Of a stretch of 64,000 nt of DNA, positions 3,511-28,618 are shown piece after piece. The translations under genes and the position numbers were made by a program. The notes beneath the pieces were generated by a model. It was not told the origin of the DNA, made no database searches, and saw only the letters and a program-made list of their open reading frames with translations. Source of the DNA: Marsupella aquatica (Eukaryota > Plantae > Marchantiophyta); contig OZ316899.1 in NCBI GenBank assembly GCA_973895155.1, positions 13,891,934-13,955,933 on the forward strand. The letters run 5' to 3'. The stretch's first letter is position 1; every line of letters begins with the position of its first letter.

Positions 3511-4116
3511 AGTGCGGTCATTTGACGACTCGCACTACAAGTGACCAGAAAGTGAAGACATCCTCAGTGGCGGCGGCGGCCGCCGGGAAGGTATTTCTAT
3601 TTACCACGATTGACAATATCGATGCATTTTTATGTCAAAATCCGTACGACTTGTGATATGGCTGCCCGTAGCCCGCGGCCATTGCCCAACACTAGAACTA
3701 ATCTAATCACAATTAAAAGGGCCTTACCAGGATTACTTGGGCCCAACAGGGCAGGGGTTTGAATCCTGCCTGGCACAGTTCTCCTTTGAAACAAACCCCA
3801 TCCAAAAATGGGGTTCATTCATCAAAGTGACACTTAGTAAAAATTTACATCCACATTCTTTCACCGGCAGCCAACAAGGATGGTCACGGGCAAGGAGCGT
3901 GCGAGGCCTCGATATTGTCATTTGCGCTGAATGTTTTTCTGGGGTACCTTGGAGCACGCACTGACGCAAATCCCTGACTTCGTGCATTGTCGAATATGTG
4001 GTCAAATAGCAATGGGCATCATCATGAATCCTCCTTGGGTAAGATTCTCGTCTGCGATAGGAATTAGTATCATTCAAAATTTAGTGGATCTGTGACAAAC
4101 CTAACAGCAATAATTC

Positions 4117-5492
4117 AAGGTATATGCTTATGTTCAGATCTGCCCCAATCAACCCCCTTTGACAATTTCTTACATATAATTCTTGGGAAGAGCAGTATAG
4201 GGGGAGACTTTATCACGGTGAACTCTAATTTTCTATTATATGAGCCCGTGGTCTCGTCCGTGGTATGCTGCAATTATGTCGAGATAAGAGTGGGCCCACA
4301 ATCCACTCATGATAAGATCAAATGACACCGGACGTAGTCGTGGATACTTTTGTGTTTGAAGACAAAACTAGTATGGTCTTCAAACATTTAGGGGTCTCCA
4401 TTTGTCTGAAGTTTAGAGGTAATAAAATTGGGCTGCTATCTCCATAATGTTCCTATATAGTTGCTTTGTTGAGAATCTTTATCAGTGCATTCCACTAGAG
4501 ACAAATCTATGTTTGGATCTCACTCACAGAAAATGCCCTGGCGGATCTCTTTCACACCAATTAATTTGCTAAATCGGCACACTTGCATTCAGAAATTATT
4601 TCAAAATGTTTCCAATCTTTATGCCGCAAGACCATTATGACAGCCAAGAATCCAAACACCTGTAAAATTCTCCAAAATCCTTGAAGTGTTTAGGGTTTAG
4701 GGTTTAATGTTTGAATCTGAGTTGCCTTTTGCTTCCATTACGAGCAATTGAACTAAGACACTTTGCATTATGTACTCTCAACAAAGTGTATTGTATTCAC
4801 TAGAATAAACATATCAACAACAATTGATGACAACATCAAATTCTTACAAACTTTCTTATAGGCTTTCCCATCAGTTATCCTAAACCCACGTGCAATTGCG
4901 TCTTGCTTTTGGGCACGCTCTATCTTGTAGTGATAAAATGTCCACTTCAAATAGATCCCCTCTATGCCAGAGATGCACAATGACATCAAAATCTCCAACA
5001 TTGATAGTGCTAAGTGTACCTCACACCACTACAATGTCATCTAGATTGCATGCAAACTCTACCAAAAAGAGACTGAGTTTCCCAATAACCCTCAATACAA
5101 TAGATTCCCCCAAACCTCATGACCAACAGAAGTCATCATGACAGAATTTGAAACAATGAACATTTGGACCAAGTTATATGAGGCTAATTCAATAATGAAA
5201 CATCTGAAGACATAACATGTATTGTCTTCACATCATTTCTGAAATCCTTGATCGTCATCGTCAAGGCACGACCGACCCTAAATGAAGCATTTGACGGTTT
5301 GGTCAAGTCGCTTGCACCCACGGACAGGTTTAGGTAGACTGCAATTGCAATACACGGCATGTCATGAACCATAAACATATCAAAGGGGGTCGATTGGGGC
5401 ACGTTCGAACATAGGGGGTCGATTGGGGCAGATTTGAACATAGGGGGTCGAGCAGGAAACAGTCCAAAGGGGGTTGATTGAGCATATACCTC
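4117..5492. mobile_element. Non-autonomous Mutator-like (MULE) TIR element
   Basis: Perfect 9-bp TSD CAATAATTC (4108-4116, 5493-5501); termini AAGGTATATGCT / AGCATATACCTC; subterminal inverted block TGTTCAGATCTGCCCCAATCAACCCCCT vs tandem copies of AGGGGGTCGATTGGGGCA at ~5383-5450. Confidence 0.85.
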
Positions 5493-8400
5493 CAATAATT
5501 CCAGTCTTGTAGAGAGAAAATTACGGGATTATTGTGTTGTACATTCATCTATTCATGTATTTCAGAGTGGGTCTTGAAAGGTTCACAGTAAGTTGTTGTT
5601 CTCCCCGATGGTAGGTGTACAATCACTGAATCACGCATCCACTATTCCACTGGTTATGGTGGGTCCGTGGGTGCAGTACGTCGTTAATGAACCCTATACA
5701 GTACAGGCGCCAGCCCATTGAATCGCAAGGGATCCTCATCAATCATGGACGAGGACATCATGAAGTCATCAACCAGGCCCGTGACCGAGAGGGTCGGTCA
5801 CAAAGGCTCAACTAAATTGTAAAATGATTACTGTAAGGAAGAAAATCATGTTTGACATGTGGCCAGTGTGCCATTTCTTATATTCCCAGTGTCCTACACT
5901 TGGTAGCATTCGCTAGAATCTAAAATGGCAAGAAAATCATATTTGAGATGTGCCCAGTGTCCCTAAATGGTGCATGAGACTTGCATTACTTTGCAAGTAT
6001 CATGCACGTAACACATCAATAAAATATTATTTACCTTGTATTTGTTATGGTTTTTCCAAACATTCAAACTAAATGAATGATCACAGGAATGATCTTTACC
6101 TTGTACTCCTTAAGTTTTCCCCACAGAAAAAGAATGAAATGAAATTTGGTATGCTCTCTTACATGAATGGAGATAATTGCTCGACCATATGTATTTGGAA
6201 CAAAATTTTGAAAGAATAATCTAGTATCCTGGAAACATAAATTGAAGTTGCACTGGATTAAGAAGTTTACACATTATTTTGCATATAAAGTCATGATTAA
6301 TTGAAAGATTCTGGAAAATTCAAGTTCTTGGTCTAAACCCTAAATCCAGCCATGCTCATCCATTACCGTCAAACAATACACTCCCATTGGTGACATAGGT
6401 TTAGGGTTTGATAGTTGTTCTTAATTTTCCGTTCATCCTATTGTGACCCTCGCAAACTCTTTTCGATGACAGGCCAGGTTAATGTCACACCTTATCTACA
6501 TTATTATTTGATAATAATGTTGCCCTTAATTGCCCTTAAATAATTCAATGTTAAACAACATTCAACATAACACAAGGCAATGCAAGAAACACATTCGAAC
6601 CTCCTGGATGAAAAGTCGTTCAAGAGTTGCACTTCCTAGTGCTTCACCAGCTTGAAGCTTCCCTCCTCGTTTTTATTGTCTTCTTTCGTTTATCATGCGC
6701 CCAGATTAGAAACATCAACTCTTAATTACTTTGGCACTGAAGATGTTGAAACCGATAATACTATCGTGGTTTTCTTTGTATTTACAAATCCGTCAGGGTT
6801 TCATATATAAAGAATATAAGTTTAACAAAGTAACCAGGGTGGGAATATACAAAAACCATGGCATGTTTTTAAATACAACAAAAATGATGGCAACGTTGTA
6901 AATTAGAACATGTTCAGTGGCAATGTACTGTAGTTAAAACAGACAGGGCAGTTAAATAAACGGTAGCAAAAGGGACCGCAGCAGACGTCCATGACAAACG
7001 CAATATTGCACACCTAAGTCCAGCGATGGCAAGAAGCTCTAACTTTTGACCCCTGCGTTGAAGTGAACATTATTGGCAGATTGGCTGGCCCTTAACCCCC
7101 TGGCCGGGAACCTCAATTCAACCTGAATACTAAAACAACCCTGGCGGACTCGGACTGGTGTGCCGACTCAGATAGTTATTATCCAGGGGTTTAGGACTTT
7201 AGGGTACAAATCGTGCAGAACCCCATGAATTTATGGTTTAGGGCGGGGAAATAGCAGTATATGATGCACGGAATAGCATTCTCGAGATGCACAAAATCCC
7301 GTTGAACCACAGGGAGTATGTACTCTGTAGAGTGTAGAAGGAGGCCAGAGTTGGGGCCGGTCCGGCCAGAGGAGAATATTTGTAAGTGGAGGAGTGATTA
7401 TTGACCGTTGGCTGAACTCCTGTAGAACTTTAAGTTCAGCTTTGTGGTGGGGGCCGAAAAAGGACTCTAAACTTCTTTTTTTGTCTGTGTATACGTTCCT
7501 CGCACACTATTCTGCGTATACTACTTGAAAAATAGTAGTTGCCCACTTGAACACTCGTTAGTTCTTGTTAGGCATAGAACTACACAGTATACTATCATCA
7601 ATGGCTCCCTCTATCTTTATTCTCTCCAACTTACTTTCAATGTGTTTGTTTTTTCCTTCTTTCTTCTTTCTCTTTTTTTCTTTTCTTTTTTCCCATGGGT
7701 GAAATGGGTCACCTGTGACACTGTTTCCAAGGGGCTTCATAAGAGGGGTGACTCTTTTTAAGGGACCTGTTTTTGTGTGGGAGCGTTCCATGTCTTTGTT
7801 TTATCGGTTTTTTTTAATTTAATTCTTTTTTTATTTCTTTTTCCTTTGGGTGAAATGGGTCACCTGGAAGAGGGACAACTCTTTTGAAGGGTCTAAAAAA
7901 GAGGGGAGGAATACAAAAGTAGTGGAAGAATAATTGTTAATAAATTAAACCAGTATGTGGGTCTAGTTGTGAGTTGTTAGTAACATTATTGAGCTTTAAA
8001 TTTCCAATCACTTTTTTGTCAATTTGGACTCTTCCAAAAGGAAAGTTGTTACGGACCCCATTAGAGGTCCCTTCCAAAATTCCTGGCACCAGAGCGTTGT
8101 CCTGAGGATAAGCAAAAAGGTGGGAAAGGTCTTGAGAAACACGCTGGGTGTATGGCTGCTTGAGATAGTAGATGGTTACCAACAAGACAACTCTAAGCAA
8201 CAAGACTTCTAATCAACCAAGCATCACAAAATTATCCACCTCATCCATAGGCAAAGCAAAGTAACTCATCCATTTACAAAATTGAGGACAACTTCTCCTC
8301 AATAATCAATAACTATAGATTTTTCTAAGTCAAAAGTAGGTCTCTATCAAGACCCTCCTAGCAAGTAACACCAAGTAGTATGTATAAGATTGCATCTCAA

Positions 8401-9441
8401 CCCCTCCAACAAGTCTATGAAAAACAAGGCTTCAAAATAGCCTATCTACTCTTGTCCTACACCATCATAACAACTTCAAGAACTTCAACTCTCAAGCAAG
8501 CAAAGCCTCAACCATGGAGAAAGCTCATCCCCTTCCATACTCCTTACTTATCATCCTTCAATGTTTCCTTCTCCCAAACTGAGTGGAAAATTGACCAGCG
8601 CTTCCGCACAAGAGTGAAGCCAATAATTTCCACCTTACTTTCAATGTTCTAGATATTGGGTAAGGATTTCAACAAAGGTGCCCCTTCCAAGCTACACAGA
8701 CCCCCAAGGCAAGACAAATCCACACCGGTGGGTGAATGAACAAGTCAATTACCAAGGCAGCTGCACTCAAGGTTAGGCAACACACCTCCAAGCACACATA
8801 AGCCCAATTCATTCACATCTACTTCCCCAGGTCCCTCTTCCATCAAAGAAACTACCTCCCAACTCTCAACTAGGCCCTTCAAACATTAGGCACCTAGAAG
8901 AGAGGAGCTATAGCTCTTTTACTCACAATCATGGCAATATCTCTCTTCCCCACCTCCAAGCTCTCAACTCTGAGAAAGTGAGAATGAAGAATGATCTCCA
9001 CCTTCCCTCCAAGCTCTCCCTTAAGCCCCTGACCTGCCTCCCCCATCAGAATTTGCAACTTCCTCCTCCAGCCCACTTCACACCAACCAAGCACTTGGCA
9101 GCAATTTACTAGCAGCCCAACAACTGCCCGCCACCTCTCCACCATAAATCGGGCACTAAATCCAAGTGAATGTTGAGCAAATAGGGACCAGACAACAGCA
9201 AAACCATTGACCAATCTCAATCCAACCTGAACTCAAGCTCCAACCACCCTCCAAGCCTCCCCAACACTTGTCAAGGCCTAACTTGCAGTCCAACTAGCTT
9301 TTGCCACCTCTATGAACTCAACCACCTGGTTAACCTCCTCAAATAGTAGCCCACCACCAAGGCAAGGCTTGACCTTGTCTCCTAGCTTGAGTTGTCATAC
9401 TCAAGCTTGAGCTTCACCCTTAGCCATGCCAACACCAACAC

Positions 9442-9690
9442 TTGTCTCCCCTTCATTTGCTTGCAAACCGGAAACTACCACCTTACCGGTTTAACAACTC
9501 TTTTAACTTTAGTAAGAAGGGGTGGCCATTAGTGCCACACCACAACCCTCCTCTTCACCTACCCAAGATTGTCTTGCACTCCAAAGCTCGAGCCCTATCT
9601 CTTGCACATGCCACCTAACAATTGTCTCCCCTTCATTTGCTTGCAAACCGAAAACTGCCACCTTACCGGTTTAACTAGCATTTTAACTTG
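9442..9690. repeat. ~70-bp direct duplication at 180-bp spacing within CpG-depleted decayed TE DNA
   Basis: TTGTCTCCCCTTCATTTGCTTGCAAACCG..CCTTACCGGTTTAAC at ~9442 and ~9622. Confidence 0.75.
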
Positions 9691-10970
9691 AGTAGATCTA
9701 AGTGAATAGGAGGTAGCCAACAAGTCATATTTGATCCTCTCCTTTGAACTTCAAACCCAAGCTTGCCACCTCCCTAGCTAAGTACTTAACCGTGGTTAAA
9801 TTACTCTAAATAATCCTATTTTCTCCAAAAGTTCTAAGAATAAGCTTTGTACATAATTAGTGGATAAATAAATACCCATTACTAAGCTAGTAAGCAAAAA
9901 TATGGAGTGGCTCTATCTTCTTTGCCTTTGGATCTTAAATTCCCGTTGATGATCCCATTGGCCAAACTAATCTTGCCAATTTGCTCCAATTTTTTGTTAC
10001 TAAAAATAGTAACAAATGCAAAAACTTTTCTATTATTAGCCCATTTTGGTCAACTTAACTTTAGTAAAAAAAGGAAGAAACATGGAATCCAACCATGTAG
10101 TACCTACCAACTACCTCCTTATTGGTTCTACATTACACTTGTATCACCTTTATTTACTTGTCCATCCAAAATTATGCAAAGGTTGCATGTTTTTAATCTT
10201 TTTCTTTCTCTTCTTTTGCACAAGCTAAACATGAGGATTTCTCCCTTAGGAAGAAAACCTCATGACAGCGTGCCACGTCAACAACAATTACAACAAACAA
10301 GACTTGTCCGTTTTGTGAATCAAATTTGCAGTTTTCAATCATGTTTGCCTCAACTTGGCTGTAAATTTTGGGGTTTGGGGTTTAGGGTTTAGAAATTTTA
10401 GAGTGAAAAAGGGATGTAAAAATTTATAAATGCAAAGAGCAAGACGGGTAAAACTGTCACTATGTAACCGTTTTAGTTACATGTCCAATTTTAAAAATTA
10501 AATCATGCAATAAATAATGACTAATAACTAACTTGATAACTTCCTTGTTAAAGGATAATTGGCACATGGAGTAAGATTTTCAACCTTTGCAATTTACGCA
10601 AACTATGGTCGGAACTTGAACTCAGTGAATTGATACTATTCATTTGATCAGACATTGATCTGGTTTCAAATGTACTTGTCGAGGACTGACTATTAACTCT
10701 CTTAGCTTGAGAATTTGGTTGGTTGCATGTAGCAAAAAAGTCTGATTTTGACATCTGCTTGTGATAACCATGTTGTCGACTTTGGCCTGGAAAGCAAAGC
10801 ATTCCTGTGACAGTTGAAAAAATGTCAAACTGCTCAGGCCATGGCTGAATGGGTCCAAAATGATTTCTTGAGAAAATCTAATCTAAACAATGCAAGCTGT
10901 GAAAATCTATCAATCATATTTGTCGAACACAACATGGCTACTAGCATCCCTTCCTAATCTTCCTAATCAG

Positions 10971-11034
<64 letters not shown>

Positions 11035-11036
<2 letters not shown>

Positions 11037-12200
11037 AGAGGAACATGGAAGACTAATGATGACAACCCTCGGAAACTAAATGGGATGTGGATATAAGTCT
11101 GGACTTTGTCATATGAGAGGGCATGACCCCCATAACACTTCAATCCTAATACATCAATATTGGTTTACATAAACCTGGGCTATCGGAGTAGACCCAACAA
11201 ACCTAGGCGCCCACGTTTGGCCCTGGAAAATACCCTAAAAACGCCGCCAAAGCAACGGCACTGCCATTTCTTGAGTCGGTTGTTTGTGCCCAGTGGCTCC
11301 TGAATTACATTCTAAGCCATACGAAAACACCACACACTGAGGTCTGTGACGTTGCATTATACACTGTAGCAAGCTCGTGCCAGCTCTGGCAAGGATCAGC
11401 TTCAACCTGCTGCAGCTCGTAAGGACAACCTGTTCACAGATCGTGAAGGAGGAAAGGTGTCGACTGTGCAGGATTCAGTAGAATCCAATGGGTGATAAAA
11501 ATAAACAGGTACAATGTGTGACTATGTATGGGAAAATGTTCATATCTAATACTTTCTGAAATACGAAATTGCTCATACTGTCATCGCTCCAATAAAATAG
11601 ATGCTTAGGATGAAGTGACTAATCTATCCCTAGCCCATGTCTCCCCGTAGCCGTCCGGACAATGCTACAGAAACATGGGACATGAGATTTTGTTTTTACC
11701 ACATTATTTCTACCCTGTGACGGGGGCTGAATGAAGGCGCAGGGGATGTGGATCACTTCAGTCAAGTGATCCCTAGGGACAGAGTATGGCCCATGCTCAA
11801 TGTCTCTGACTAGACATTGGAGTAAGCCGTCACTCATCGAAAAATCGCATGTGTAAATGGGTACACTGGATTTAATTCTAATGATAATGAGAAGCTACGA
11901 ATGATCCAGTGATTTACGGGTATGGTGAATGTAGATGGTTATGATATCTCTGAGTGATGATTCTATGGTTTAACATCTACCAGTGTACATTTATTAAATT
12001 GAACAGCGATTGGCATATAAGAAATTATGAGTATACTATTACCATCTATATGATATGTGTATGGATATGAGTATAAGTATGGGCGATGCACGCAACTGAA
12101 GAATAAATTGTGGATTTCGGAATGCTATGTCGTCAGTAACAATCGGTCCTGAGTTATATCAGGGTGTGATACTATGTGTATGGACACAAGTTTCTATCGA
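11035..12200 (+). repeat. Upstream pseudo-LTR (1166 bp)
   Basis: Near-identical to 17551-18716; two substitutions spotted by eye (TCTAATACTT/TCTAATGCTT and AGCGATTGGC/AGCGATCGGC). Bounded by CT tracts at 10975-11034 and 12201-12211. Confidence 0.95.
11623..11783 (+). ncRNA. Conserved multi-stem RNA structure, candidate ribozyme (copy A)
   Basis: Five stems whose pairing is preserved by compensatory changes in the diverged copy at 19401-19563; invariant ATGTCTCCCCGT, ACAGAAACAT and GTGACGGGGGCTGAATGA. Confidence 0.75.
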
Positions 12201-13827
12201 TCTCTCTCTCTTGACCCACTTTCCCAGCTGGCCCTGGAAAAACCGATTGTCACTAACTGCTATATGCATTATTGGACCACAGAGTGTCTGGATCACTGAG
12301 CTCAGGCAACTTGGGTACGAGGAACGCCTCCCCAAACCTGCCCATATTGGCATTCAAGCCATCATGTCGACGATCGAATCAACTGTATTACATGAGTTTA
12401 TCCAAACTTTTGATTCCGCACTGATTGCCAAGGCAAATGAAGGTCCGCAAATCTATCTCTTGAGTACTTTGGGCATCTAGGAGTTTTGTGTCATCGCTGA
12501 CCTTGATGCTCGTAAACTGGGAGACCAAGCTTTGCAACAACTCAAGGACTACTCGGAATCCCTCCGTCATATGTTGGAGCAGGATAATAAGAAATACTCA
12601 GCTGCTGAGGAAACTGCCAACAAGATTGCTACGGCTATTCACCGGCCATATCAGGCCCCAAGTAGTACACCAATACCACCTCCGGCAGCAATGGCTACAC
12701 AGCTACAGAACAATCCATTATTCAGAATGCACTTCTATCGGGCTGAGGAGATACCCATGTTGCAAAGACACATCTCATTGGTTGATTCTTCACAGAAGGC
12801 ATCTATGAGTCATTTATCAGGTGGAGACCAGTACATTCCTACGTTCCCTCTTAGGAATTATGAGTGGGAGTTGTCACGCAACGACGGACAAGCATGGGCT
12901 GTTCCGAATCTCAACATGCTTGCACCCATCACACTGGATATGTGGAAACAATGGGCCACCATATCTGATGCAGAAATACAGACATGCAGAGAACACGCAC
13001 TGGTTGCCGATTCCCCATCCAAACGGTATCTTGGGAATAGTGCGTGGCCCATGAAGAACTTCGCGGCCGGGAAATACAGCTGTGCTGAACCTGCTCTGGT
13101 TCGTGTAAGGCTCGACCTTAACACTAAGTCTCCACGGGAGGAATCCCATCCATCGAAGATGTGGAATTGGCACCGGCCTTTTTTAAAATGTGATTGTATG
13201 TCTTCGCGGGATAAGAAAAACTCATGTGATTCCAAGATGCTATGGTTTGACCATGGAATATGGTATATGCTTACACATATGGACCTGTTTTTTGAAGCTG
13301 AAGGAATGCCCGGAAAAATGATGTCTCTGCTTGTGTTTTTAAGCACCGATGCCAAGCCATCAGTACTGGATCACATCACTTTTATGTTCATCCGGGAGAT
13401 GATGATCAACGCCTGCCTGGGGCTCTACAATAATCCACTGGCACCCGTGCTACCCGAATGTGGCCGTGGACATTGTGTCCAGATGATTGAACGGCTTATT
13501 AAGCCACCAGAATTCTCTGATGCTATCACTGAGGATAGTAGATCGGGCGCCAAGAGAAGATGGGACCTCAATGATACTCCTGTCCGTAATACTGAGCCTC
13601 AGCGGAGGTCTCTCTTCCGAAATCAGACACCAGCCGGTACACCTAATTATGGCACGGGGTATGGGCGTGGATACAACAATCACAATTCTGCCCCAGCGCC
13701 TGGACAAAATTCCTATGGACGTGGACGCAATCGTGGAGGTCGGAACCACCACCAATACAATGGTGGACCTCGCAACAATAACTATTCTCCACTCCAACGT
13801 CGAAACATCAATTTCGACCAACGATAG
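12127..13827 (+). pseudogene. PLE ORF1, unknown protein (~520-560 aa) with Cys/His cluster and RG/N-rich tail; one in-frame TAG at 12478-12480
   Basis: ORFs 12127-12480 and 12532-13827 share a frame, and homology to 20287-21823 spans the stop (WITELRQLGY/WSRELLSLGY; WNWHRPFLKCDC/WNWHRPFLRCSC; WFDHGIWY/WFDHAIWY). Start codon uncertain. Confidence 0.8.
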
Positions 13828-14964
13828 AGGCTATACCGGCAATTACACTGCATGACATAATATATGCTGCTCGGATCATATGACGTATACTTGGGATACC
13901 TAGACATGCACTCCATCTTCTGAATCATTGAAAATAGATCTGTTTTGATGATGCATTTTCATACCATTTTTGCGGGTCTTACATACACCGGGAGCACAGA
14001 ACCCGTATGTACCCGGGCTTGGATCCGGATGATTTATGGCGAGGTCTCACTTGGAGACTAGATCACAAACTATCCTTAGTCTGGACAAAAGCAGTGGTTC
14101 ACTGTCTAGTCAACAATGTAATACGTCCATGCCAATTTAATAGTTTGACCACGGCTATAGGTTTATGAATGCTCATGCATCACAATGATCTTGCATATTT
14201 TGTATGGTTCGGATTTTGGAAACATCAACAGGGCAAAACTGCTTTTGTTGGTAGATGTTGATATGTTTGGGCAATACTGCTGATAGATACACATGCTACT
14301 GATGAACTTGAGTTATATATGACACGACACGAATCATGATCCTGTTTAGGATAGCTTAATGCATGTTGATGCCCGATAGGACCTTTCTTGCTTGGCTGTA
14401 TGATATGACTTTTTAGTGTCTGGCGGGGCTTATAATGTTAACCATTCACATGATATCCTAAATGGTCTACGTCTTTCCTTGACTGCACACATACTACCTT
14501 GAGATTATGCACAGCATCTCACTGAGGTTCTTGAAGTATGGGCAGCACTAATGGGATATATCTTACCTTGGGATAATGCACGTTATCCCACTGAGGTCCT
14601 GAAAGATATGTAGTCAATCATCATGGGTTTCGGTTGTGTTTATAAGCTTGGACGTCACCACTCTTTACTTTTACTTGATCCACAAATATCCATTAACTAC
14701 TGTGGACTGGAATACTATGTCATGGCTATCGCAGACTTGACTTTACTCTCGGAATGTTCTGAGTGGAATATTTTTCAGTTGACGGCATTGCATCAATCGT
14801 CTCGACTCAGATCTTATAATACAGTGATCCTAGTACCTGCAAGCGAACACATCATTTACGGATACAAGATACCAATTTGCCACTACCAACTGTTCCCGAC
14901 AAATGATACCTGTTAAACACCACTTTACATGCGGATGAGACTGCGCTGATCTATTTTATTTGCA

Positions 14965-17190
14965 ATGGAAGATACTCCTACTCCTATACAGGAGAACCGC
15001 AATGACGACTCCATGATGGATCCAACACAAAATGAATCACCACAGAGGGTCATGATCACACTTCCGCATGGACGTTGGTCCATTACACGTACCAAAGACC
15101 GAAAGATCATTGGTTATATACATCTCACATACGTGAATCGGGGTTTTGAATGGATTCGGGTGAAATCCATTTTTCATGAATTTCTTTGGTCACACAAACT
15201 TGAGGATGCTGCTACTGCCTTGGATGATATTATATTTGGGTGGAGACACCTACCACCTATTTCTACCATGGTCTACCTACCAAGGGCGGTATTTTGCGAC
15301 TTCACTATCACTGAAGCCGAAGATACTGTGAGACCATGTGACTGTGGGCAACGACGTTTTTGACCTTTTGTGGATAATTTAACTGCTCTCGATGGCACAC
15401 AAGCACATGTCAGAACAGCTGATCTAAACATCATACATAGCAAGATACTTCGAGACATGTTAAGATGTGGACTCAACCACATTCCTATGCAACCCACTGA
15501 GCTTGCGGAGATTATTCAGGAGGTGGATAGGGCATGGCACAAGACTGTTGGGCTACTTGATATCGACCCACATATGCGAGAAGTTGGGACCACTTGGATT
15601 ACATCACAAGTGGACAAACAACTTCGTGCGGGTGCACGGAACAACACAGGCGGACATCGTATATCCACAAGATATTTACTACCGGCCAATGCGGTAGATG
15701 AGTTGAGATACCTCTCAGAGAGGTTTTTTATGGCTGGCTTAGATAAAGCCAACAACAACATTTCCATAATTTGCATTCAACATCTCCGACAAATGGCATT
15801 AGCCAGATTGAGGGAACCAGACTTCACTACTATCCCTACATCGACTGAACAAACTATGATAAACCTGCAACAGTCAATCGAATCACTAATTCCCGAAATC
15901 AGATTTCGGCCGCTTGGATTACCATATCTTATGGCTACCTACAAACTCCACAAACAGAAATATCGATGGATCACCAGTGCATCAAATTGCATCTTCTCTG
16001 GTTTGGCTAGCTTGATCACACAGGTACTCAAGCTGCTACTGAATGAAATACGAGACTGGTGTGGGAAGCAGACTCATGCTATTTACCTGATTACTGGCAA
16101 ACGATTTAACTTCTTATGGATGATTGAATCCATGTTTGAATTTGTCCTCAACCTTCCGACAAATATCCACAGCATGTTTGTTGCTGACATAACACGGTGC
16201 TACGAAATGATCCCACTCACGGGTGATGATAATCTCCCAGAGGCTTTGGAATACATTGTCAAGAAGGCTTTTCGACATCACAAGGGTCAGGCTAAATCAC
16301 ACAACGTGTGGGTACACTTTGATACCTCTAACAGGATGGCTGATAAAGCACGATGGCATTCACGAATACCAGGCAAAACGTGTTGGATCGAGGTCACACA
16401 AGCACGCTTCATTCAGCTACAAAACTGGTTGATTCATAATTGCTACATTCGACTTGGTGACGCGACATGGCGACAACATACCGGAATACCAATGGGATTT
16501 TCATGCTCACCTCTGTGGTGTAATCTCTACTTTGTGGCATACGAAATCCGGTTCATGCTCAGGTTGGCAAGACTCCAACGTTATGATTTGATGGAGCTAT
16601 TTCAATCTACATTTCGGTACATCGACGATTTCTGTACCCTCAACAACACACAAATACAAGAGTTTCTACAGCCTGATCATCCGCGTAACGAAGAATCACC
16701 GTTCTGGATTTATCCACTACAGATTGTGGAAATCAAGGCCGAACTTGACAAATATGTGGAAAATAATGAATTTTGGGGCACCAAAGGACACTTCCTAAAT
16801 GTCCTAGTGGAGATCGTGGACACACAGACGGGAGAACACACTACGACCAAATACGATAAGCGCCGATGTCTACCGTTTCCCTTCCAACAATATATCCAGT
16901 TCAAATCTAACCGACCAGTGCAACAGGCATACAATATCACAATTTCGCAAATGTTGCCCATTCTATATATGGCCAACTCCCCTGTCTTAGCTATGGCGGA
17001 ACTAGACAGGCTTGCACAGACTCTTTGCGCTAATGGATTTGCCATTCATCGAATATTCAGGTTAATGCTCAGATTTTGTACTGAACAACTACTACCTGGC
17101 ATTAGACTTGACATTTCGGCAGTGATCTACATGCTCCGACAGCGAGCTTTTAATGATGCCAATGCCAGAGTCCGGCAATCCATACAATGA
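14965..17190 (+). pseudogene. PLE ORF2: CxC linker + Penelope-type reverse transcriptase; one in-frame TGA at 15361-15363
   Basis: ORFs 14965-15363 and 15370-17190 are in frame. RPCDC..HVRTADL..LRDMLRCGLNHIP resembles the Naiad/Chlamys CxC linker; RT motifs DKANNN, YKLHK..YRWI, VADITRCYEMIP, GIPMGFSCSPLWCNLY, FRYIDD, HFLNV, YDKR. Confidence 0.9.
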
Positions 17191-17429
17191 TACACGAATC
17201 ATGGATTAGAGACAATAGCCCGCCACTAGTCAATGACCACCGATGATGTACACGCACAATGGGATGCATTTCTCGCATCGATAACGATACCATTTGGGCC
17301 CAAGCAAGTTTTTTTGTCACGTTTGATTCAAGGGAGTAGCTGTTTGATATCTTTAAAGATCCAGATCTACAATGTTTTTCAGATTTTCCATGGAGAGAAA
17401 GAGAGCGAATGTTATCTGCTTTATTTGGA

Positions 17430-17474
17430 GAGTATGGTATGCACTCCCTCCTGGGGTGAGTGCATACCATACTC
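17430..17474. other. Perfect 17-bp-stem hairpin
   Basis: GAGTATGGTATGCACTC (17430-17446) / GAGTGCATACCATACTC (17458-17474); a second imperfect hairpin follows at ~17484-17523. Confidence 0.9.
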
Positions 17475-17516
17475 ATCCCGGGAGGGAGCTCCATACCATG
17501 GGTATATGGTGGTGGG

Positions 17517-17550
<34 letters not shown>

Positions 17551-17552
<2 letters not shown>

Positions 17553-18716
17553 AGAGGAACATGGAAGACTAATGATGACAACCCTCGGAAACTAAATGGG
17601 ATGTGGATATAAGTCTGGACTTTGTCATATGAGAGGGCATGACCCCCATAACACTTCAATCCTAATACATCAATATTGGTTTACATAAACCTGGGCTATC
17701 GGAGTAGACCCAACAAACCTAGGCGCCCACGTTTGGCCCTGGAAAATACCCTAAAAACGCCGCCAAAGCAACGGCACTGCCATTTCTTGAGTCGGTTGTT
17801 TGTGCCCAGTGGCTCCTGAATTACATTCTAAGCCATACGAAAACACCACACACTGAGGTCTGTGACGTTGCATTATACACTGTAGCAAGCTCGTGCCAGC
17901 TCTGGCAAGGATCAGCTTCAACCTGCTGCAGCTCGTAAGGACAACCTGTTCACAGATCGTGAAGGAGGAAAGGTGTCGACTGTGCAGGATTCAGTAGAAT
18001 CCAATGGGTGATAAAAATAAACAGGTACAATGTGTGACTATGTATGGGAAAATGTTCATATCTAATGCTTTCTGAAATACGAAATTGCTCATACTGTCAT
18101 CGCTCCAATAAAATAGATGCTTAGGATGAAGTGACTAATCTATCCCTAGCCCATGTCTCCCCGTAGCCGTCCGGACAATGCTACAGAAACATGGGACATG
18201 AGATTTTGTTTTTACCACATTATTTCTACCCTGTGACGGGGGCTGAATGAAGGCGCAGGGGATGTGGATCACTTCAGTCAAGTGATCCCTAGGGACAGAG
18301 TATGGCCCATGCTCAATGTCTCTGACTAGACATTGGAGTAAGCCGTCACTCATCGAAAAATCGCATGTGTAAATGGGTACACTGGATTTAATTCTAATGA
18401 TAATGAGAAGCTACGAATGATCCAGTGATTTACGGGTATGGTGAATGTAGATGGTTATGATATCTCTGAGTGATGATTCTATGGTTTAACATCTACCAGT
18501 GTACATTTATTAAATTGAACAGCGATCGGCATATAAGAAATTATGAGTATACTATTACCATCTATATGATATGTGTATGGATATGAGTATAAGTATGGGC
18601 GATGCACGCAACTGAAGAATAAATTGTGGATTTCGGAATGCTATGTCGTCAGTAACAATCGGTCCTGAGTTATATCAGGGTGTGATACTATGTGTATGGA
18701 CACAAGTTTCTATCGA
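17551..18716 (+). repeat. Downstream pseudo-LTR (1166 bp)
   Basis: Direct copy of 11035-12200; bounded by CT tracts at 17519-17550 and 18717-18729. Confidence 0.95.
18139..18299 (+). ncRNA. Same RNA structure (copy B, in downstream pseudo-LTR)
   Basis: Identical to 11623-11783. Confidence 0.75.
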
Positions 18717-19400
18717 TCTCTCTCTCTCTTTACAAGATGACCCATTCAATAATCAATCTGTCTCTCAGTTCAATTGCACCTTGTACCCCAACTCTGTATA
18801 ATTTTATTCATACCCACAATAAGTACTAAATCACAAAAACACATATAGTCAGGAGAAATATCTACGTATGTAGTCACCGCATTCAAGATAATACATCCAC
18901 ACCACCTATCCAGATCCACCCTAAATCTAACGGCTACCGCAGGCTTAAAAAAACTAAACCTAAAAAAACTTTTCTCCCCTCTTACGTAAGATGCCCTACC
19001 TACACACTTTTACCATTATATAAAGCATGCTCACCACAGGCTCTGACGCATAGTTCCTCCTGAAACATTCCTTTTTGCATGGTACTTCCCCCCTCTACGT
19101 AAAGCATTCTCCTGAAACATCTTCAACCTCCAGGTTGAATGACTGGCTCATATTCAGTTTATCTCTTCTCACTGTCACCCTATTCTTTTGTCTCTTACTG
19201 GTGGCACTCTGCCCCACTCTGTTCTTTCGTCCTTTACCACTAGCTCTTTTTTCTTAGCCCTATAGAATTACTTTCTGAGCAATCCAGTGCACACTCTTGT
19301 AAAGATTCCTGACCATAGCTAATGGCGCGAGCTGAATAGGTACCATTCTTAGCATATTGACTCCTTTGCTGTTATATTTTCATGAATAACTTAGTCTAGC

Positions 19401-19563
19401 CCATAACTGATATATGTCTCCCCGTTACCGCCTGGGCATCCTGGTAACAGAAACATATAGCATGAATTTGTCAGTTACTTGGCTTGATTCACCCTGGTGA
19501 CGGGGGCTGAATGACGAACCTAGGGCTTGCAATGTAGTCATGTCAACTACATGTCAGTTATGG
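19401..19563 (+). ncRNA. Same RNA structure, diverged subfamily (copy C)
   Basis: Closing stem CCATAACTGA/TCAGTTATGG; TATATGT/ACATATA; GTTACC/GGTAAC; CCCTGG/CTAGGG; ATGTAGT/ACTACAT; same invariant loops as copy A. Confidence 0.75.
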
Positions 19564-20286
19564 TTGATGGTCTACTTCTGTCTGTAAGACAAACAGATTG
19601 GATGCACCGATAGTCCATGCATAAAGCTCTGCTTAGAGCTGGATGCTAGTTATAATAAGCTTTATATGTGTTGTATACTGACCCTGCTAACTATCAATTT
19701 TTTTCTTGTTCTTAACAATGCAGCAATTCGCTTCTGTCCACACCACTAGTATCTCCAAAAATTATTTCTTGCTGACTTGATAACAAAATTCTTCCTACTA
19801 TACCCCTGGTTTTGAGATCTTTCTACCTATTAATACTTTGTAAAAAGGTTTTTTTGTTATTTCTAACACTTGTTATTTCTGTCACTAGTTTTCTGTCACT
19901 AGTTATCTTGGTCTCTTGTTTTACTCTGTCTTTCATGCAGCAGACCCTGCTACTGCGCTTTGACTATGCTAACTGTATACACATTATGCTAGTGGATGGA
20001 TCATTTCATGAGTATTAATTTCTCTCTCGTCAGACCTTTTCATTTCTTTGGACTTTACCATGTGTCACCGGCAGTATATGAAGTTTTTTAACTTGGACTA
20101 TAAAGGTGTAATGTATATATATCTAAGACTCCTCCCAGACCCTACTGTAGGACCATGACATGCGATAGGTGTGGACAAAGTAATATCTTGATGTGGCCTT
20201 GATTGGGTGTTTTTTTGCTACTTTATTAACATCTCTCTCTAACTTTATTCCACTCCTCTGATTGGATTCGGAGGACCGCTATCAAG

Positions 20287-21823
20287 ATGATTACTAATCC
20301 CACACATCGATGTTCTGTCTGCTCACAAAAACGCTGGTCACGGGAACTCTTGTCTCTAGGATATGATAATGACCTTCCACGCCCATGTAACATGGCACTC
20401 CAAGCAACACTGGCTTCTATTCGCCAAACTGAAATCCATACTGCCATCCAGACACATGATCGGGAAGTAATGAATCGCGGGGAGGACGAAGCACCAGGTC
20501 AGTTACTTCTGCATGTTTTAGGGATCAATGAATGGTTTATTGTTTACCAGGCGGCCGGCTGTATCAGCACTGAGGCTACTATGACCAAACTCGATTCCCT
20601 CATTAGCTCTCTAGACAGTTTCGAATACATTGATGAAGACAAACTAGAAACATCCCGCATCACTAGTCGTAAGTTAGCACGCATGCTCGCCTATACACCG
20701 AATGTTCCGACCACAAACGATAGTCGTTCTTCTTCACCTGCGGCTGATGTTGCTTCAAAGCTTCGCGAAAACCCGCTACTCAATACCGCTTGGCTATCGG
20801 AGGAGGAATGCATTGCCTTTGACGAGGCGATCGATGGGGTACAAACATCACAGAAGGAACTGGACGATTCCAAACAGGACGGGGAGCCGTTTATTCCCAA
20901 CAATCCCCCACGTTTTCTCGAATGGGAATCGGCTCGTCAACAATCTGGCACCTATCTCACTCGGTATGTGGAAGTCTTGGGCTTCACTGTCTACTGAAGA
21001 GATCAAAGTCTGCAAAGAGCACGCCCTCCGCAGCTTCTCTTGGATTGAAACCTCCCCCAATATATCAACTAATTGGCCCATGACTATATTTGGCGCTCCC
21101 AAGTACAAATGTACCATGGCGGCTGGAGCTAAGATTCGTGGTAACTTCGTTACCAATTCCTCCCGTTCCTCATAGGAACACAAAACAAAACTCTGGAACT
21201 GGCACCGACCTTTCCTTCGCTGCTCCTGCAACTCTACGTCTAAAGGTGGCTGCACTGGCCAGATCATATGGTTCGATCATGCTATATGGTACATTGCTAA
21301 TCATCTTGAGCTATTCTTTGCTGTGTCATCTACACAGGCGCGACTCATTCTTATGATGAGCTTCTTAGGAGGCGAAGCACGTCGGGTGGTATTGGATCAG
21401 GTCGCATTCTTTTTTACTAGGCAACTTCTACTAGAAGCAGCTGGTGAGCAACTTCGGGATCCCTCGGCACAGCTACTTGCCAATCATGGGGAAGCTAAAG
21501 GTGCTCGTATCATCGAAATGCTCATCAAACCGGGAGAATTTTCGGAGCAAGATCCTACGCCCAAACGTAAATGGAATCTAAATGGGAATTCCCCATTCGT
21601 AGAATCTGCTAATCGTAAGGGCTTCTATGCGAACCAAACTCCCCAACGTGGACGTGGACGCGGCAACTATTCATGGCAACCCAACACTCCCCAATCAGCA
21701 CCTGGAGCACGGCCGCGATTCCAGAACAACAAAGTTCCCAACAAAGCACCAACCAGCAATACGGGATCTTCCATCGGGCAATCACCCCTGCCACGCCGCA
21801 ACATGAACTTCAACGATGTTTAA
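20287..21823 (+). pseudogene. ORF1 homolog (one frameshift ~20940, one TAG at 21173-21175)
   Basis: ORFs 20287-20997, 20702-21175 and 21323-21823 piece together into a protein collinear with 12127-13827. Confidence 0.8.
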
Positions 21824-21992: not shown

Positions 21993-22493
21993 ATGCTACA
22001 CATCGGAAGTCCACGCAATCACCTAATTATATCTTCCTTTACGGCATTATCTAACACACATGTATGCTTATCTACATTCCCAAAAGACCGACACCTTCTC
22101 CAACTTCCGCATGGCCGACGTACAATAACATGCAGTCGGGATCGTTCTTCTCTACAATTTATCCATCTGTTATACACAAGCAGATCCTTCGAATGGCTAC
22201 CTCTTCGATTGATTTTTGCGGAGTGTCTTGAACTGTGCCAACTGAAGACACTCATTCCTGCACTCGATGGTATATGTTTTGGATGGAAATACATGGATGC
22301 TGTATCTACACTTTGTTATCATCCATCTATGGTATTCTGCAACTTCAGCATTTCCTCCTTAACTACGGATCGCGAAACGTGCGCTTGTCAGTTTAACATA
22401 TTTAAAACCTTCTTAGATCCATTGACTAGCAATGAATTCCATTTAGTGGATACACCTTGTTCTAGCCATGTGCGAACGACTAACCTCGACTAA
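21993..22493 (+). pseudogene. N-terminal fragment of PLE ORF2 (CxC linker), RT deleted
   Basis: LPHGRRTITCSRDR..FIHLLYTSRSFEW..FGWKY..VFCNFSI..CAC..HVRTTNL aligns with 14965-15430. Confidence 0.85.
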
Positions 22494-23870: not shown

Positions 23871-26800
23871 ATGACGTTCCCATGTGATGGGTGTCCTGGG
23901 TTTGAGTTTGTTACTATTTCTCAAAGAGCTGCTCATAGGAGAGTAGTTCATCAGTCGATTTGCAGTGCCATCAAGGCCGATGGCACGAGATCTTCAGTCC
24001 GCATATCTGTAGCTTGTGATTGGCCGTGCCCTCACCGTTCTTGCTTGTCTCGCTTCCGTCGACCGAACCGCTTGCGGAACCATTATGCCAGAGAACACAT
24101 CCAAGGTACAACCCATAGTCGTGCATCGGTCCCAACAGGCGATTTGGGTGATTCAGTTCCCAGTAATGAAAGTCCCCCGGTGGCGACAATCTCGGAATTT
24201 GTGGACTCCCCAGAGGTGTTAAGTCAAGCAGATTTGTCTGTGGTGAAGTATGAGGGCATGGCATTGCTCTTGTGCATTACCTGCAATGTGATCCTGGACG
24301 GTTCCAACGTGAGGATGGTTTGCAGGCATGTCTGGAAGGATTTCGCGCCCCTCCGTAGAAATGGGGGACAAAGCTTATGGGGCCGACAAGATGAGCAACA
24401 GCTGTCACAGGCCATTGCAAGGATGCAATTAACCCCCCCAATGCAGTATGGGATCATTGCATTCGGGGATTAGTCTCCCCAGTCCCCGGTATTGTTGTTC
24501 GTAGAGGCTACTCGTGCCCCTTTTGCACTACCTACCACAGCGCAAGTAAGAAGACTATGCGTAATCACACGATACGAGTGCATCCCAAAGCTACCGACGT
24601 GACCATGTGTCACAGTAGTAGTGTTCAATGTCTTGTTCAAGGTGCCGGGAAGAAGTACTTTGCAGTCCGATGTCCAGACGACCAAGCCCGAGGTAGCACG
24701 CAAAGCCTGAAGTCTGCGCTGTCCAAGGCAATTCTTGAGATGGAGCTGACGCTCCCTGCACAGAACAATCCTCCCCCTCGAGAGCTATCCGCGTGGCTGC
24801 AAGCCACTAGATGGGTGAATGTTGCGACAGGACTCATACCAGAGAATTCAATGTACAATGATATCAGTGGTCCGATGCGTTTGGCTCGCTGGGAAGGTTT
24901 CCCATATGCATGGGTCCCGGATGTTGTGCTCTCATATGCCACGCTGGTGCAAAAAGTCTTGGTCGAGGCGGATTTCAGAGTGAGGACATTGGTTGTGAGC
25001 CCTGACTCCCCACAAGGATTCACCGAGTTCCTCCAGGAGTCCATGATAGAGAAGTATTGCTCAGTCATGACAAATTTCCTGTCCGCTTTATTGCTCTCTG
25101 CATGTGATCCTCTAGGCTCCCATGTGCTCCTTGTTGTGAAGGCTCCCGACTGCTTGAAGGTCCTTCTCCAAGCCCTAAAGATCCAGTTGGAGTCCCTTCC
25201 AGAGGGTCCCATAGACCCGGACCACTTTGACTACACTATCCTACACGACCTGTTGCTCGGTTTGTGGATCCCCCCACATCGGATGAAAGTGGTAGCCCAA
25301 AAATTGACGGACAATTTTTTTGCAGTTTTTGATCCTGTCCTCGCTCAAAGCGTGTGCACTCTCCACTGGTTATGCATGGAAGGAATCCACAGATATCACC
25401 CCAATGCTGTCAATGATGAAATTCTGGTGCTGAGCGGCAATCAAAATGGAGTTATGTTGCACTCTTTGGAATCGAGCGACAGCCGATGACCTGGATGTCA
25501 ACAATGCAAGAGCAATTATGGTATACGTGGAAGATAAACCCAGGCTAATAGAGACACCATTCAACTACATTTCTTCTTGGCAGACCCTTATGTGCTCGCT
25601 CATCGGCGAAAAGCCTAAAAGGCCGGATCTCATTGCATCAAAGCCCGGTTACACCGAATGCAAAGTGAGCGGTTATCCGATCACACTGGACGGCTATAGA
25701 GAAATGGTGATGGAGGTGATTAGTGAATGCACCGTCCTCACACAGGAACAAGTTCTTCTGGGTCTGGACACGGATTGGTTGGAGCGACTATTGGAACCCG
25801 GGGGCAGCGTAATTGTGGACAAGCTCACCAAAGAAAGAAACCCGTTCCACGAGCACATGCACGATTTGCACCAGCATCTGTTCTCCAATGACATGAGATC
25901 ATCACATTTTGTCCATCACTACGACAAGAACGGCATCCAGATGTGGAAGAAGAAGGCCCTGCGCGAATGGCTGGCTGCCACCGATAGATTGAGCGACCGA
26001 CTCACTTGGCTGCTGCATTTTACATCGGGTCAGCCAGCTAGGGCAGCGGAGTACGGCAGTTTCTTGATCCGCAACACCACAACCAACCAACGGACGTTCC
26101 TGTGGGCAGAAGGGACCTTGGTGATACACCTAACATATAACCAAATGTGTGGTTGAAGACGCTTGAAGCACATCATCCGGTTCTATGTCTGAGGGTAACC
26201 TTCCTCCAGTACCTTAGCATGGTGAGGCCTGTGCAGGTGTTTGTTGCGAGTCAATTGTGGGGTGGAGAGGAAGCAGCGGTGTACGCGGATTGTTGGTTTG
26301 TTGCAACCGGAAAAAGGCGTTTAACACGGCATGTGAGTGCAGGTGTGGAGAGGGAGTTCCTAAAATGATTTAAGGCCCCGTTTGGGATTAGGCCTCATCG
26401 GCACATTATAACCTTCTTTTCCGAGCCCATTCGGTTCTAGCTGCAAATATCGTTGGCTAATGACTGGCTGGATGCATCCGTAGGCCACTCGGTGTCCACC
26501 GCTGGCCTAACTATGCACAGAATAGCCAGGATTTGAGAGTTGTGGATCGACATGAGTGGAGGAACTTTAGGTTTGTCACAAAGAAGCTTCACCGTCTACT
26601 GAGGCTGCCGACAGACCTTAGGCGACACCTGGAGGCCAAGGCCGAGCCTGAGCCTAAGCCTAAGCCTGAGCTGCGTCCGGGCGGTCCGGCCCCACCTAGG
26701 TGTGGAAGTTGAGTTTTCTCCGCCCTCAAAGCGAATCCGGATCCTTCACAGATGTGATGATGGATCAAACACCGATCACGGTGACAAACTAGAGGGCCTG

Positions 26801-28618
26801 GACGCTGCTGCAATGTATGAAGCACGGATTGCAATTTGCAGCCTTGGTCATAGGGATTGGAAGTTGCATGAGCAAGCAATTGCAGTCGCTACAGTGGTGG
26901 ACAACATGCAGAATTTTGTAGCCATCCTACCCATGGGTTCCGGGAAATCGGCCGTTTTCATGGCAGCCGCTCGGAGTAGCGGAAGGACGGTGGTTGTCGT
27001 CGTTCCTCTGTATGATTGTGTTGATCCACACTCAGATGGCGGAGTGCAGGACCGCAGGCTTTGAATGTTTGGAGTTCAGGGTGAGCTGTATCCCTATGGC
27101 AGAGGTGCCTCCGCTCGTGTTTGTCCCTGTCGAGATTGCCATCCAAGAGAGTTTCCAAAGTTGGGCCAAACAACTTATTTGTGCCGGAAAATTGCATTCA
27201 ATCATCATAGACGAGGTGCATACGGTGTTGTGTCCCTACCATCATCAGTCCATGGCGCAGCTTCTTTGGCTTTCCCGACTGCATTGTCAGCTGATTGGAT
27301 TGATGGCCTCTCTACCACCCCGCAAGGAAGCGGCGTTATGGGGGAAGTTGGGAAGTCCATGGAAGGTGATTCGGGCCTGTACAACACAACCCAACCTCGA
27401 GTATAGAGTTGAGGAGGATGAGGCCAGGCTGGATTTGAAAATCGTGGAACTTGTACGCAATTGGGTGGCCGCCGCCAGCACAGATGACAGATCCCTGGTA
27501 TACACTATGACGAAGAATGAAGCTGTGGATTTGGATCAAACTCTGCAACAACATCATGTCCAAAGTTGCTTCTTAACCTCGGACATCGTGAAGGCAGATA
27601 GACTTAGCAAGCTACGAAGTTGGGAGGTGGGCACGCCTAAAGTCATGGTGGCGACCTCAGTGATTTCCTGCGGATATAACTATCCCAGCATTCGCTTGGT
27701 CGTGCATCGGGGAGGCTTTTATGGGTTGGAAGAGTACCACCAAGAGTCGGGCAGATGTGGACGGGACAGCCGGCCCGGAGTGTGCGTGGTGTTTTTGCAC
27801 AAGTACTATCGTGCTTGGGCGTTGTCCGCGCCATCCGTGCAAATTGAAGGAGTCAACAAGGAGAGCATGAAGATTGCGCACCAATGGATCGCGAACAGTA
27901 CCATTGGCGGCGATACAACCTTCACCTTGAGATGGACGGGAAGGCACAAGTTTCTGCCCTTCTTCCCGGCAGCTTGGCATGCGATGTGTGCCTGGAAGCC
28001 GCGGCTACCACGCCAAGCCAAAGTGGAGGCAATCACCCAAGACACCACTCGCACACAAGGCCAGATGGAGCAGCTGTTCAGGATGTATATATTCCGAGAC
28101 CGGAGAGCATAAGGATAGAGGCAAACATGCAGAAGGATATCATCAATCTCAAGTATGTTTGCCAGCATGGGGGTGATGGGAGGCGATGTCTCTTGTGTTG
28201 GGAGGACTCGCATAGCCCTGCAAATCATGGAATAAGGGAGTGTGGCGTAATGAGAGGGTTATGCCTGCGGTGTGTATCCAATCGCCATCGGGTTTCCAAC
28301 TGTAATGTGAAGGGTCAAGAACGTCATTATAATGCTTGCTTCAAGTGCTTCTTTCCGTTTGATAAAATTGACCAAACCCAGGTGCACAAGGGGGAATCCG
28401 GGAGCAGCACCTACAACGATCTGTCCGGAGAGAGGATATGAATTCTAATGTGGCATGCATATAGGAATGACGTCTCGCGCAGACGATTCAGGCAGCTATT
28501 TCCTGACATGCCATTGGATGACAGTAAATTTGAGCCTTGGCTACTTTCAAAGGACGTGGAGAGAATGCTAAACAATTTTGTGCGAGTGGCGGGAGCTATG
28601 ATGAGGATGAAACCATGA
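23871..28618 (+). pseudogene. Zinc finger + tyrosine-recombinase-like + RecQ-family SF2 helicase + Cys-rich C-terminus (fungal telomere-linked-helicase-like), multiply frameshifted
   Basis: C2H2 fingers (CDGC..H...H; CPHRSC..H....H); LHFTSGQPARAAE..RN; GIRPHRHII..DASVGHSVSTAG/NYA (26390-26520); helicase motifs LPMGSGKS, VVVVPL, IIIDEVH, VMVATS..G, YHQESGRCGRD; RQC-like Cys (LACDVC). No introns needed. Confidence 0.8.

Follow-up and report, generated by a model that had tools for sequence, protein, structure and literature searches.

A covarying RNA domain with hammerhead core letters in non-circular order in the pseudo-LTRs of liverwort Penelope-like elements

The pseudo-long terminal repeats (pseudo-LTRs) of a Penelope-like element (PLE) in the liverwort Marsupella aquatica encode a covarying RNA domain built around the conserved letters of the hammerhead ribozyme. 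We analysed this domain in a 64,000-nt stretch of M. aquatica DNA (contig OZ316899.1 of assembly GCA_973895155.1, positions 13,891,934 to 13,955,933; hereafter the window, numbered from its first letter) and in copies from a second liverwort, Calypogeia fissa. Judged by its pairing and conserved letters, the block is probably a self-cleaving hammerhead variant in which the cleavage site (S), the GAAA segment (G) and the CUGAnGA segment (C) follow one another in a non-circular S-G-C order, carried in the pseudo-LTRs of liverwort PLEs that have a CxC motif and lack an endonuclease. That the structure is real and derived from a hammerhead is close to certain. The domain, its host element and the genes of that element lie on the forward strand of the window.

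A covarying fold around the letters of the hammerhead core

The window holds three copies of the domain. Copy A (11623-11783), which comprises the P1 clamp, stem III, P3, P4, P5 and P6, lies within the 5' pseudo-LTR and copy B (18139-18299) within the 3' pseudo-LTR of one element; the two are identical because both sit in the pseudo-LTR pair (11003-12211 and 17519-18727), a 1209-bp direct repeat recovered by self-comparison of the window, 99.8% identical and 6516 bp apart. Copy C (19401-19563) belongs to a second element family, which is truncated, and lies in its leader. Three exact occurrences of the 18-mer GTGACGGGGGCTGAATGA were counted in the window, compared to 0.08 expected. The RNA blocks of A and C are 77% identical and the neighbouring proteins of the two families 26-41% identical, so the block is far better preserved than the adjoining genes. 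Folded singly, the copies were somewhat more stable than shuffled sequences (z = -2.8 and -2.6).

A HMMER search with open reading frame 1 (ORF1) of the host led to proteins of C. fissa, Riccia sorocarpa and R. fluitans, and thereby to three C. fissa loci (L092, L093 and L096) with nine extra copies, which scored 29-66 bits with a covariance model of two sequences and 81-107 bits with a six-sequence model (R2). These copies lie on the strand of homologous ORF1, CxC and reverse transcriptase (RT) genes that are 35-50% identical to those of the window, and in every case, in both genomes, the strand of the motif was that of the ORFs. The window and C. fissa copies number 12 in all; covariation was measured on 11 distinct sequences from the two genomes, the set to which counts out of 11 refer below.

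Across the full 160-nt architecture (P1, stem III, P3, P4, P5, P6), 92.9% of cells were paired, compared to 34-44% when the partners were slid. Compensatory change was found in 31 of 36 pairs, a number reached by none of 500 shuffles, and the comparison of A with C alone gave 17 pairs changed on both sides. An earlier note on this DNA had listed a set of stems and claimed that their pairing is kept as the sequence changes; these stems are present, and the wider alignment bears the claim out.

The helices follow one another through copy A as follows. The 5' strand of P1 (11623-11633) pairs with 11773-11783 and closes the domain adjoining stem III, with compensatory change in eight of nine pairs. 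The 5' strand of stem III (11634-11640, its last letter U16.1) runs into C17 at 11641, 3' of which cleavage is predicted; GUC is present in 11/11 sequences and five of seven stem III pairs are compensatory. Next come the 5' strand of stem I, UCCCCGU (positions 1.1-1.7; 11642-11648), which forms a pseudoknot with 11720-11726, and the P3 hairpin (11649-11666), in which 11649-11651 and 11664-11666 pair and covary around a loop with the word GUCCGGAC at 11653-11660. Block G (11667-11679) consists of ACA (the stem II 3' strand and a spacer A), G12 A13 A14 at 11670-11672 and the stem III 3' strand ACAUGGG at 11673-11679. P4 (11684-11710), a variable hairpin compensatory in all five of its pairs, links this block to block C. 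The latter (11720-11737) is the loop of the P5 hairpin (11713-11744; 11713-11719 with 11738-11744, seven of eight pairs compensatory) and contains the stem I 3' strand ACGGGGG (11720-11726), CUGA-AU-GA (11727-11734) and the stem II 5' strand AGG (11735-11737). The peripheral hairpin P6 (11750-11772), with a loop near RRUCA, is compensatory in 7/7 pairs and 85% paired, and is missing in one C. fissa copy. Among public contigs from two organisms, most copies have A at 18255, turning a P5 U·G into U-A.

The letters that stay constant in single-stranded places are those of a hammerhead: GUC^U; GAA, next to which stem III begins with an A-U pair; and CUGA..GA, immediately 3' of stem I. C3 U4 G5 A6 .. 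G8 A9, G12 A13 A14, A15.1-U16.1 and C17 each stand by the right helix in all 11 copies, and the flanking helices covary. The A15.1-U16.1 pair is present in 11/11, as is C at position 17, a non-G letter as the hammerhead needs. CUGA..GA is kept in ten copies, and the eleventh, with CCGA (U4 to C), has probably decayed. Block G reads CAGAAAC in nine sequences and UAGAAAC in one family, where a change in the partner compensates. The place of N7 holds two letters in every copy where a hammerhead has one (AU in eight, AC in one and UA in one, besides the CCGA copy). No other core letters vary freely, and N7 is the place at which hammerheads accept any base. The loops that the earlier note called invariant are present as it listed them, without being strictly invariant: GGAC or AAU can take the place of GUGAC, and the inner letters of CUGAAUGA, AU in most copies, are AC or UA in others.

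All 12 copies have the three blocks in one and the same order. In copy A, H17 is at 11641, GAAA at 11670 and CUGA at 11727; in copy C, GAAA starts at 19450 and CUGAAUGA occupies 19507-19514. Site, then GAAA, then CUGAnGA is a non-circular permutation of the hammerhead. On the strength of these letters and their order, cleavage is rather likely to occur at the predicted site, after C11641, C18157 and C19418 in copies A, B and C. Rfam 15 returned no match at the gathering score across the window, both variants and 32 related loci, and for copies A and C, at E values up to 10, only chance-level microRNA and small nucleolar RNA matches, so that the comparison with Rfam proposed in the earlier note matched no family. 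This empty result is expected, because Rfam models cannot see a non-circular permutation.

Pseudoknotted stems, a putative four-way junction and a palindromic loop

Stems I and II were written by hand as pseudoknot helices outside the covariance model behind the alignment. Together they were 97% paired, compared to 41-56% when slid, and both show replacement of G-C by A-U. The 7-bp stem I (UCCCCGU/ACGGGGG) was paired at 100% in the 11 sequences: pair 1.6-2.6 is A-U in seven, G-C in three and G·U in one, pair 1.1-2.1 is U·G in nine and U-A in two, and CCCC/GGGG is invariant. The pseudoknot proposed in the earlier note therefore holds, with G-C, G·U and A-U alternating at one position. A second tertiary pairing suggested there, UGAC with GUCA, is not kept in C. 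fissa and is unsupported: stem I, which covaries, uses its A and C, so that the two clash. Position 19498 is G in most copies among the public contigs of two organisms, which limits an over-long stem I possible in copy C alone.

For stem II, of which the earlier note saw no obvious example, there is a short candidate of two base pairs. Its strands are (A/C), G, N right after CUGA-NN-GA and N, C, A right before GAAA. The inner pair is C-G in nine sequences and U-A and U·G in two pseudo-LTRs of one family; the outer pair is A-U in seven, G·U in one and unpaired in three, including both window families. The (A/C)·A position next to stem II is unpaired in all copies. A canonical stem II of the type-SGC hammerheads described below was tried and rejected, as the segments after CUGAnGA and before GAAA form 2 bp only, not 4-6 bp.

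P5 adjoins stem I with 0 nt between them in 10/11 copies. A longer P3, closed by G1.6 with a C, was also considered and set aside; its closing pair (26-50) is broken in 5/11 copies, and a four-way junction is favoured for this reason. Stem I, P3, stem II and P5 would meet in this junction with no unpaired corner letter in ten of the 11 copies, a geometry that we infer from the pairing pattern.

The P3 loop is self-complementary over 6-10 letters in 10/11 copies. Composition-preserving shuffles gave a mean of 2.8 of 11 and none of 5000 reached ten, a count that overstates the independence of the copies because related copies share words. The words found (GUCCGGAC, GCCUGGGC, UGUCUGGACA, CCCGGG, CCUAGG and CUCCGGAG) differ in ways that preserve self-pairing, which points to kissing of two copies, for example of the two pseudo-LTR copies on one transcript.

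The host elements and the distribution of the domain

The host PLE spans 11003-18727 with a unit of 6516 bp. It encodes ORF1 (12532-13827, 431 aa), a short frame with a CDC motif that constitutes the CxC region (14965-15363), and an RT ORF (15370-17190, 606 aa) with a weak RVT_1 match. The CxC motif at 14965-15363 is also present in the consensus of 28 homologues, and no GIY-YIG domain was found in the element by Pfam. The combination of a PLE-type RT, an upstream CxC, pseudo-LTRs, microsatellite junctions and no canonical hammerhead corresponds to Chlamys/Naiad-type elements, an assignment made by these features. The host PLE is of plant type, has a CxC motif, lacks an endonuclease and is most closely related to elements of liverworts, not to an animal Naiad. 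The earlier note was correct that Naiad and Chlamys have been reported to lack canonical hammerheads: Craig et al. 2021 (PMC8557442) found none in Naiad and most Chlamys elements, even with relaxed descriptors.

Tracts of (CT)n lie at 10975-11035, 17519-17551 and 18717-18729, that is, at the start of each unit and at the 3' end of the element. The head-to-tail junction is therefore a microsatellite and not the predicted ribozyme cut.

The second element, that of copy C, has homologues of ORF1 (20632-21814) and of the CxC region (22089-22388) with 26-41% protein identity to those of the copy A element. It looks truncated or interrupted because no RT homologue follows 22388 and several other ORFs occupy the space at 23871-26156. 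Downstream of it, a 372-aa frame at 26994-28112 has a Helicase_C domain and is RecQ-like by Atlas. A separate and unrelated Copia-type LTR retrotransposon lies at 48106-54315, with repeats at 48106-48256 and 54165-54315 that are 99% identical and ORFs with RVT_2, retroviral SH3-like and Pol_BBD domains.

Two of the C. fissa copies, at 8458 and 17462 of L096, form a pair that flanks an element as pseudo-LTRs. The same locus carries five motif copies of at least four sequence families in one orientation within 21 kb of C. fissa DNA (1368-21116), which resembles nested or tandem PLE arrays. Just upstream of P1, three of the four copies of L092 and L093 have the word GGCTAGCA (L092 3175-3185, L092 10797-10806 and L093 1157-1166), and the fourth has GCAGCTAG.

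Contigs from four public runs (two organisms), aligned to 17900-19800, showed a depth peak at 18156-18283; their alignments end at 18143-18149, 18196-18198 and 18220, and the flanks diverge. As depth peaks on these blocks, what many diverged families in those genomes have in common is no more than the hairpins of stem III and P5. The contigs displayed no ends at the predicted cut, which assembled contigs are unable to reveal, and no RNA run was found to contain the stretch.

RT homologues of about 43% identity are common in metagenomes and also occur in a moss. Searching 39 RT-based metagenome loci (L001-L039) by pattern, descriptor and three covariance models did not reveal the motif; one match to an SGC-like descriptor (L025 1890-1953) had no stem II and was dropped as chance. 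Neither a copy nor a hammerhead was found in the two contigs of ENA assembly ERZ25073694, in a Ceratodon locus, or in R. sorocarpa and R. fluitans. Logan contigs with close RT or ORF1 fragments (L040, L041, L089-L091) were too short or did not contain the motif, pattern scans of viral and prokaryote genome collections returned chance matches only, and a spurious 72-aa ORF that overlies the motif gave no candidates when used as a query for more copies. The Riccia loci have pseudo-LTRs of their own (L095 8222-9337 and 13405-14526; L094 13777-14076 and 19047-19346), in units of about 5.2 kb ending in (CT)n; as they contain neither the motif nor an Rfam hammerhead, there may be a third kind of leader RNA in these R. 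fluitans and R. sorocarpa elements. Two metagenome loci with distant PLE-like RTs (L010 541-846 and L015 66-371) have the order site, CUGAnGA, GAAA with identical spacings of 161 and 144 nt, which might reflect a type III hammerhead that contains long inserts or be due to chance, the DNA of the two loci being homologous.

Proposed mechanism, alternatives and relation to known ribozymes

The closest known arrangement is that of the type-SGC (HRIMA-1) non-circular hammerheads, which Eckert, Friedrich, Weinberg and Weinberg 2023 (PMC10085705) recovered from metatranscriptomes and showed to cleave. Both have the order site, GAAA, CUGAnGA, a stem III hairpin around the stem I 5' strand and GAAA, and a helix (here P5) that connects stems I and II distally and has block C as its loop. 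Both also have a variable linker (0-44 nt) or optional hairpin between blocks G and C (here P4), unusually conserved stem I letters, and stems I and II formed as pseudoknots. They differ in stem II, which has 5-6 bp in type-SGC and 2 bp behind an (A/C)·A mismatch here, and in the passage from stem I to stem II, where a linker of about 3 nt in type-SGC is replaced by the P3 hairpin (3-4 bp with a loop of 10-15 nt), leading to what would be a perfect four-way junction. Unlike type-SGC, the liverwort domain has two letters at N7 and extends over 120-160 nt with the additional helices P1 and P6. Type-SGC members are metatranscriptome RNAs linked to hairpin ribozymes with proven cleavage, whereas the domain described here belongs to a plant nuclear retroelement and its cleavage is predicted. 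A full-text literature search for type-SGC or permuted hammerheads returned the 2023 paper only, and no paper linking hammerheads, liverworts and PLEs was found.

The hammerhead reading is favoured by location, because the motif sits in pseudo-LTRs, where other PLEs carry hammerheads. Those hammerheads (Cervera and de la Pena 2014, PMC4209133; Lunse et al. 2017) likewise occur in both pseudo-LTRs and have likewise been proposed to process more-than-unit transcripts and yield circular templates, and they have been proposed to act as dimers through a palindromic loop (PMC4209133), as the palindromic loop here also suggests. They belong to the circularly permuted type I, many of them in minimal form, and their helix III is tiny and palindromic, whereas stem III is here a stable 6-7 bp, the palindrome is in P3 and the order is non-circular; the canonical type I motifs of Selaginella PLEs are also unlike the present motif. 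Plant retrozymes (Cervera et al. 2016, PMC4918200) are comparable in that they too are repeats of plant genomes, flanked on each side by a repeat that contains a hammerhead, and are regarded as a source of circular RNA templates, but they are small and non-autonomous, with type III hammerheads and LTR-type partners, in contrast to an autonomous two-ORF PLE with a permuted motif. In pseudoknot hammerheads stems I and II are held parallel by a base-paired device, a loop-tail pseudoknot, where the liverwort domain would use a four-way junction made by the two stems at their distal ends. Slow cleavage is known for a natural hammerhead that has an insertion after A6 (Perreault et al. 2011, PMC3088659); here the insertion is fixed in every copy.

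We propose the following mechanism. The "loop" of the stem III hairpin would hold GUC^U, the stem I 5' strand, P3 and GAAA, and the loop of the P5 hairpin would present the stem I 3' strand and CUGA-NN-GA. Pairing of the two loops would then create a 7-bp stem I and a 2-bp stem II behind the (A/C)·A mismatch, and the four-way junction would tie both stems side by side covalently, taking the role that loop-loop contacts or pseudoknots have in ordinary hammerheads. Transcription through both pseudo-LTRs would produce an RNA with two motifs, each of which would be cut after C17 to release a unit-length RNA of 6516 nt. The 3' end of this RNA would bear the 5' strands of P1 and stem III and its 5' end the remaining fold, such that 18 bp of P1 and stem III could clamp the ends, rebuild the fold and permit religation into a circle. 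A circular template could support more-than-unit-length reverse transcription, as proposed for other PLEs, and (CT)n unit junctions that do not coincide with the predicted cut fit microsatellite priming on a circular or multimeric template. Kissing of two copies through P3 may control or enable cutting. Taken as a whole, the picture of a working ribozyme in a PLE branch reported as hammerhead-less, plant nuclear, with a core locked by a four-way junction, cutting and religating unit RNA into circles, and with a kissing loop that couples the pseudo-LTR copies, is a possible but tentative one, drawn from the pairing pattern and the arrangement of the element.

Several observations weigh against cleavage. 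The two letters at N7, a stem II of just 2 bp and the (A/C)·A layer that separates it from A9/G12 are changes of a kind that usually slow hammerheads, and G·A or A·A stands at the outer stem II position of the window copies. In favour of cleavage, hammerheads with stem II deletions retain some activity. The counts for the nested helices come from alignments that had been fitted to the model, which favours these helices, and the covariation of stems I and II amounts to few events (2 pairs) and was matched by 5 of 500 shuffles. Relatives similar in RT, in Riccia, at a Ceratodon locus and on metagenome contigs, had no detectable copy. Finally, the hammerhead of an Anolis PLE cut only with the protein of the element, and insertion in vitro could proceed without it; it also produced no read ends (PMC11167929). 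The biological role of PLE hammerheads is for this reason itself debatable.

An alternative that we consider unlikely but serious is a conserved structured RNA without cleavage activity. It would serve the ORF1 and RT proteins as a signal for binding, packaging or dimerisation, would be either descended from a hammerhead or convergent on it, and would have the P3 kissing loop and the P1 clamp as its working parts. Deviations in the core would be expected to weaken catalysis, the self-complementary loop is typical of dimerisation signals, the large P1, P4 and P6 are unneeded by a minimal ribozyme, and one PLE hammerhead was dispensable for insertion in vitro. A pure binding site, on the other hand, offers no reason for invariant catalytic letters, for A15.1-U16.1 and for a non-G position 17 while the N7 letters drift. 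Nothing was found in favour of the telomerase-RNA-like, RT-binding element that the earlier note had entertained, although a non-catalytic role of this more general kind is retained as a rival.

A new self-cleaving class that merely resembles a hammerhead, with another cut site or other catalytic letters in a pseudoknotted four-way-junction fold, is very improbable. It could appeal to the unusual junction topology, to the conserved letters beyond the hammerhead core (CCCC/GGGG of stem I and the RRUCA loop of P6) and to the lack of an Rfam match even at E 10, but the Rfam blank is what a non-circular permutation should give, and the hammerhead core explains the conserved single-stranded letters one for one. 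Between the novel and the permuted ribozyme offered in the earlier note, it is thus the permuted, hammerhead-like form that fits, by its S-G-C order, the helix closing block C and the conserved core; a novel class is unsupported because the core is that of a hammerhead. Equally improbable is a DNA-level signal or a recently exchanged block with no RNA function, such as a pseudo-LTR promoter with a palindromic protein site, or inter-family recombination: PLE pseudo-LTRs hold an internal promoter, 6-bp palindromes also suit a dimeric DNA-binding protein and exchange could account for the high identity of the A and C families, but 31 of 36 helix pairs changed on both sides with pairing kept, the G·U intermediates make sense only in RNA, and orientation is fixed relative to the ORFs.

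Non-circular ribozyme permutations have been known from one paper, in which they came from anonymous metatranscriptome RNAs, and the same order is found here in autonomous liverwort PLEs, a defined host that gives the permutation a genome, a neighbouring gene set and a testable job. Should the domain not cleave, it would remain a retroelement RNA of 120-160 nt that covaries strongly and has a loop probably used for dimerisation. If a junction-tied core with a 2-bp stem II and a two-letter N7 does cleave, the hammerhead core would tolerate more than its known forms suggest. If it also works in the element as proposed above, it would represent a new architecture of the hammerhead and, among non-circularly permuted ribozymes, the first for which genomic host and biological role are known. 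For the Naiad/Chlamys-type elements, this suggests that their "hammerhead-less" status may need a qualification: at least one plant lineage may carry a form that is invisible to descriptor searches.

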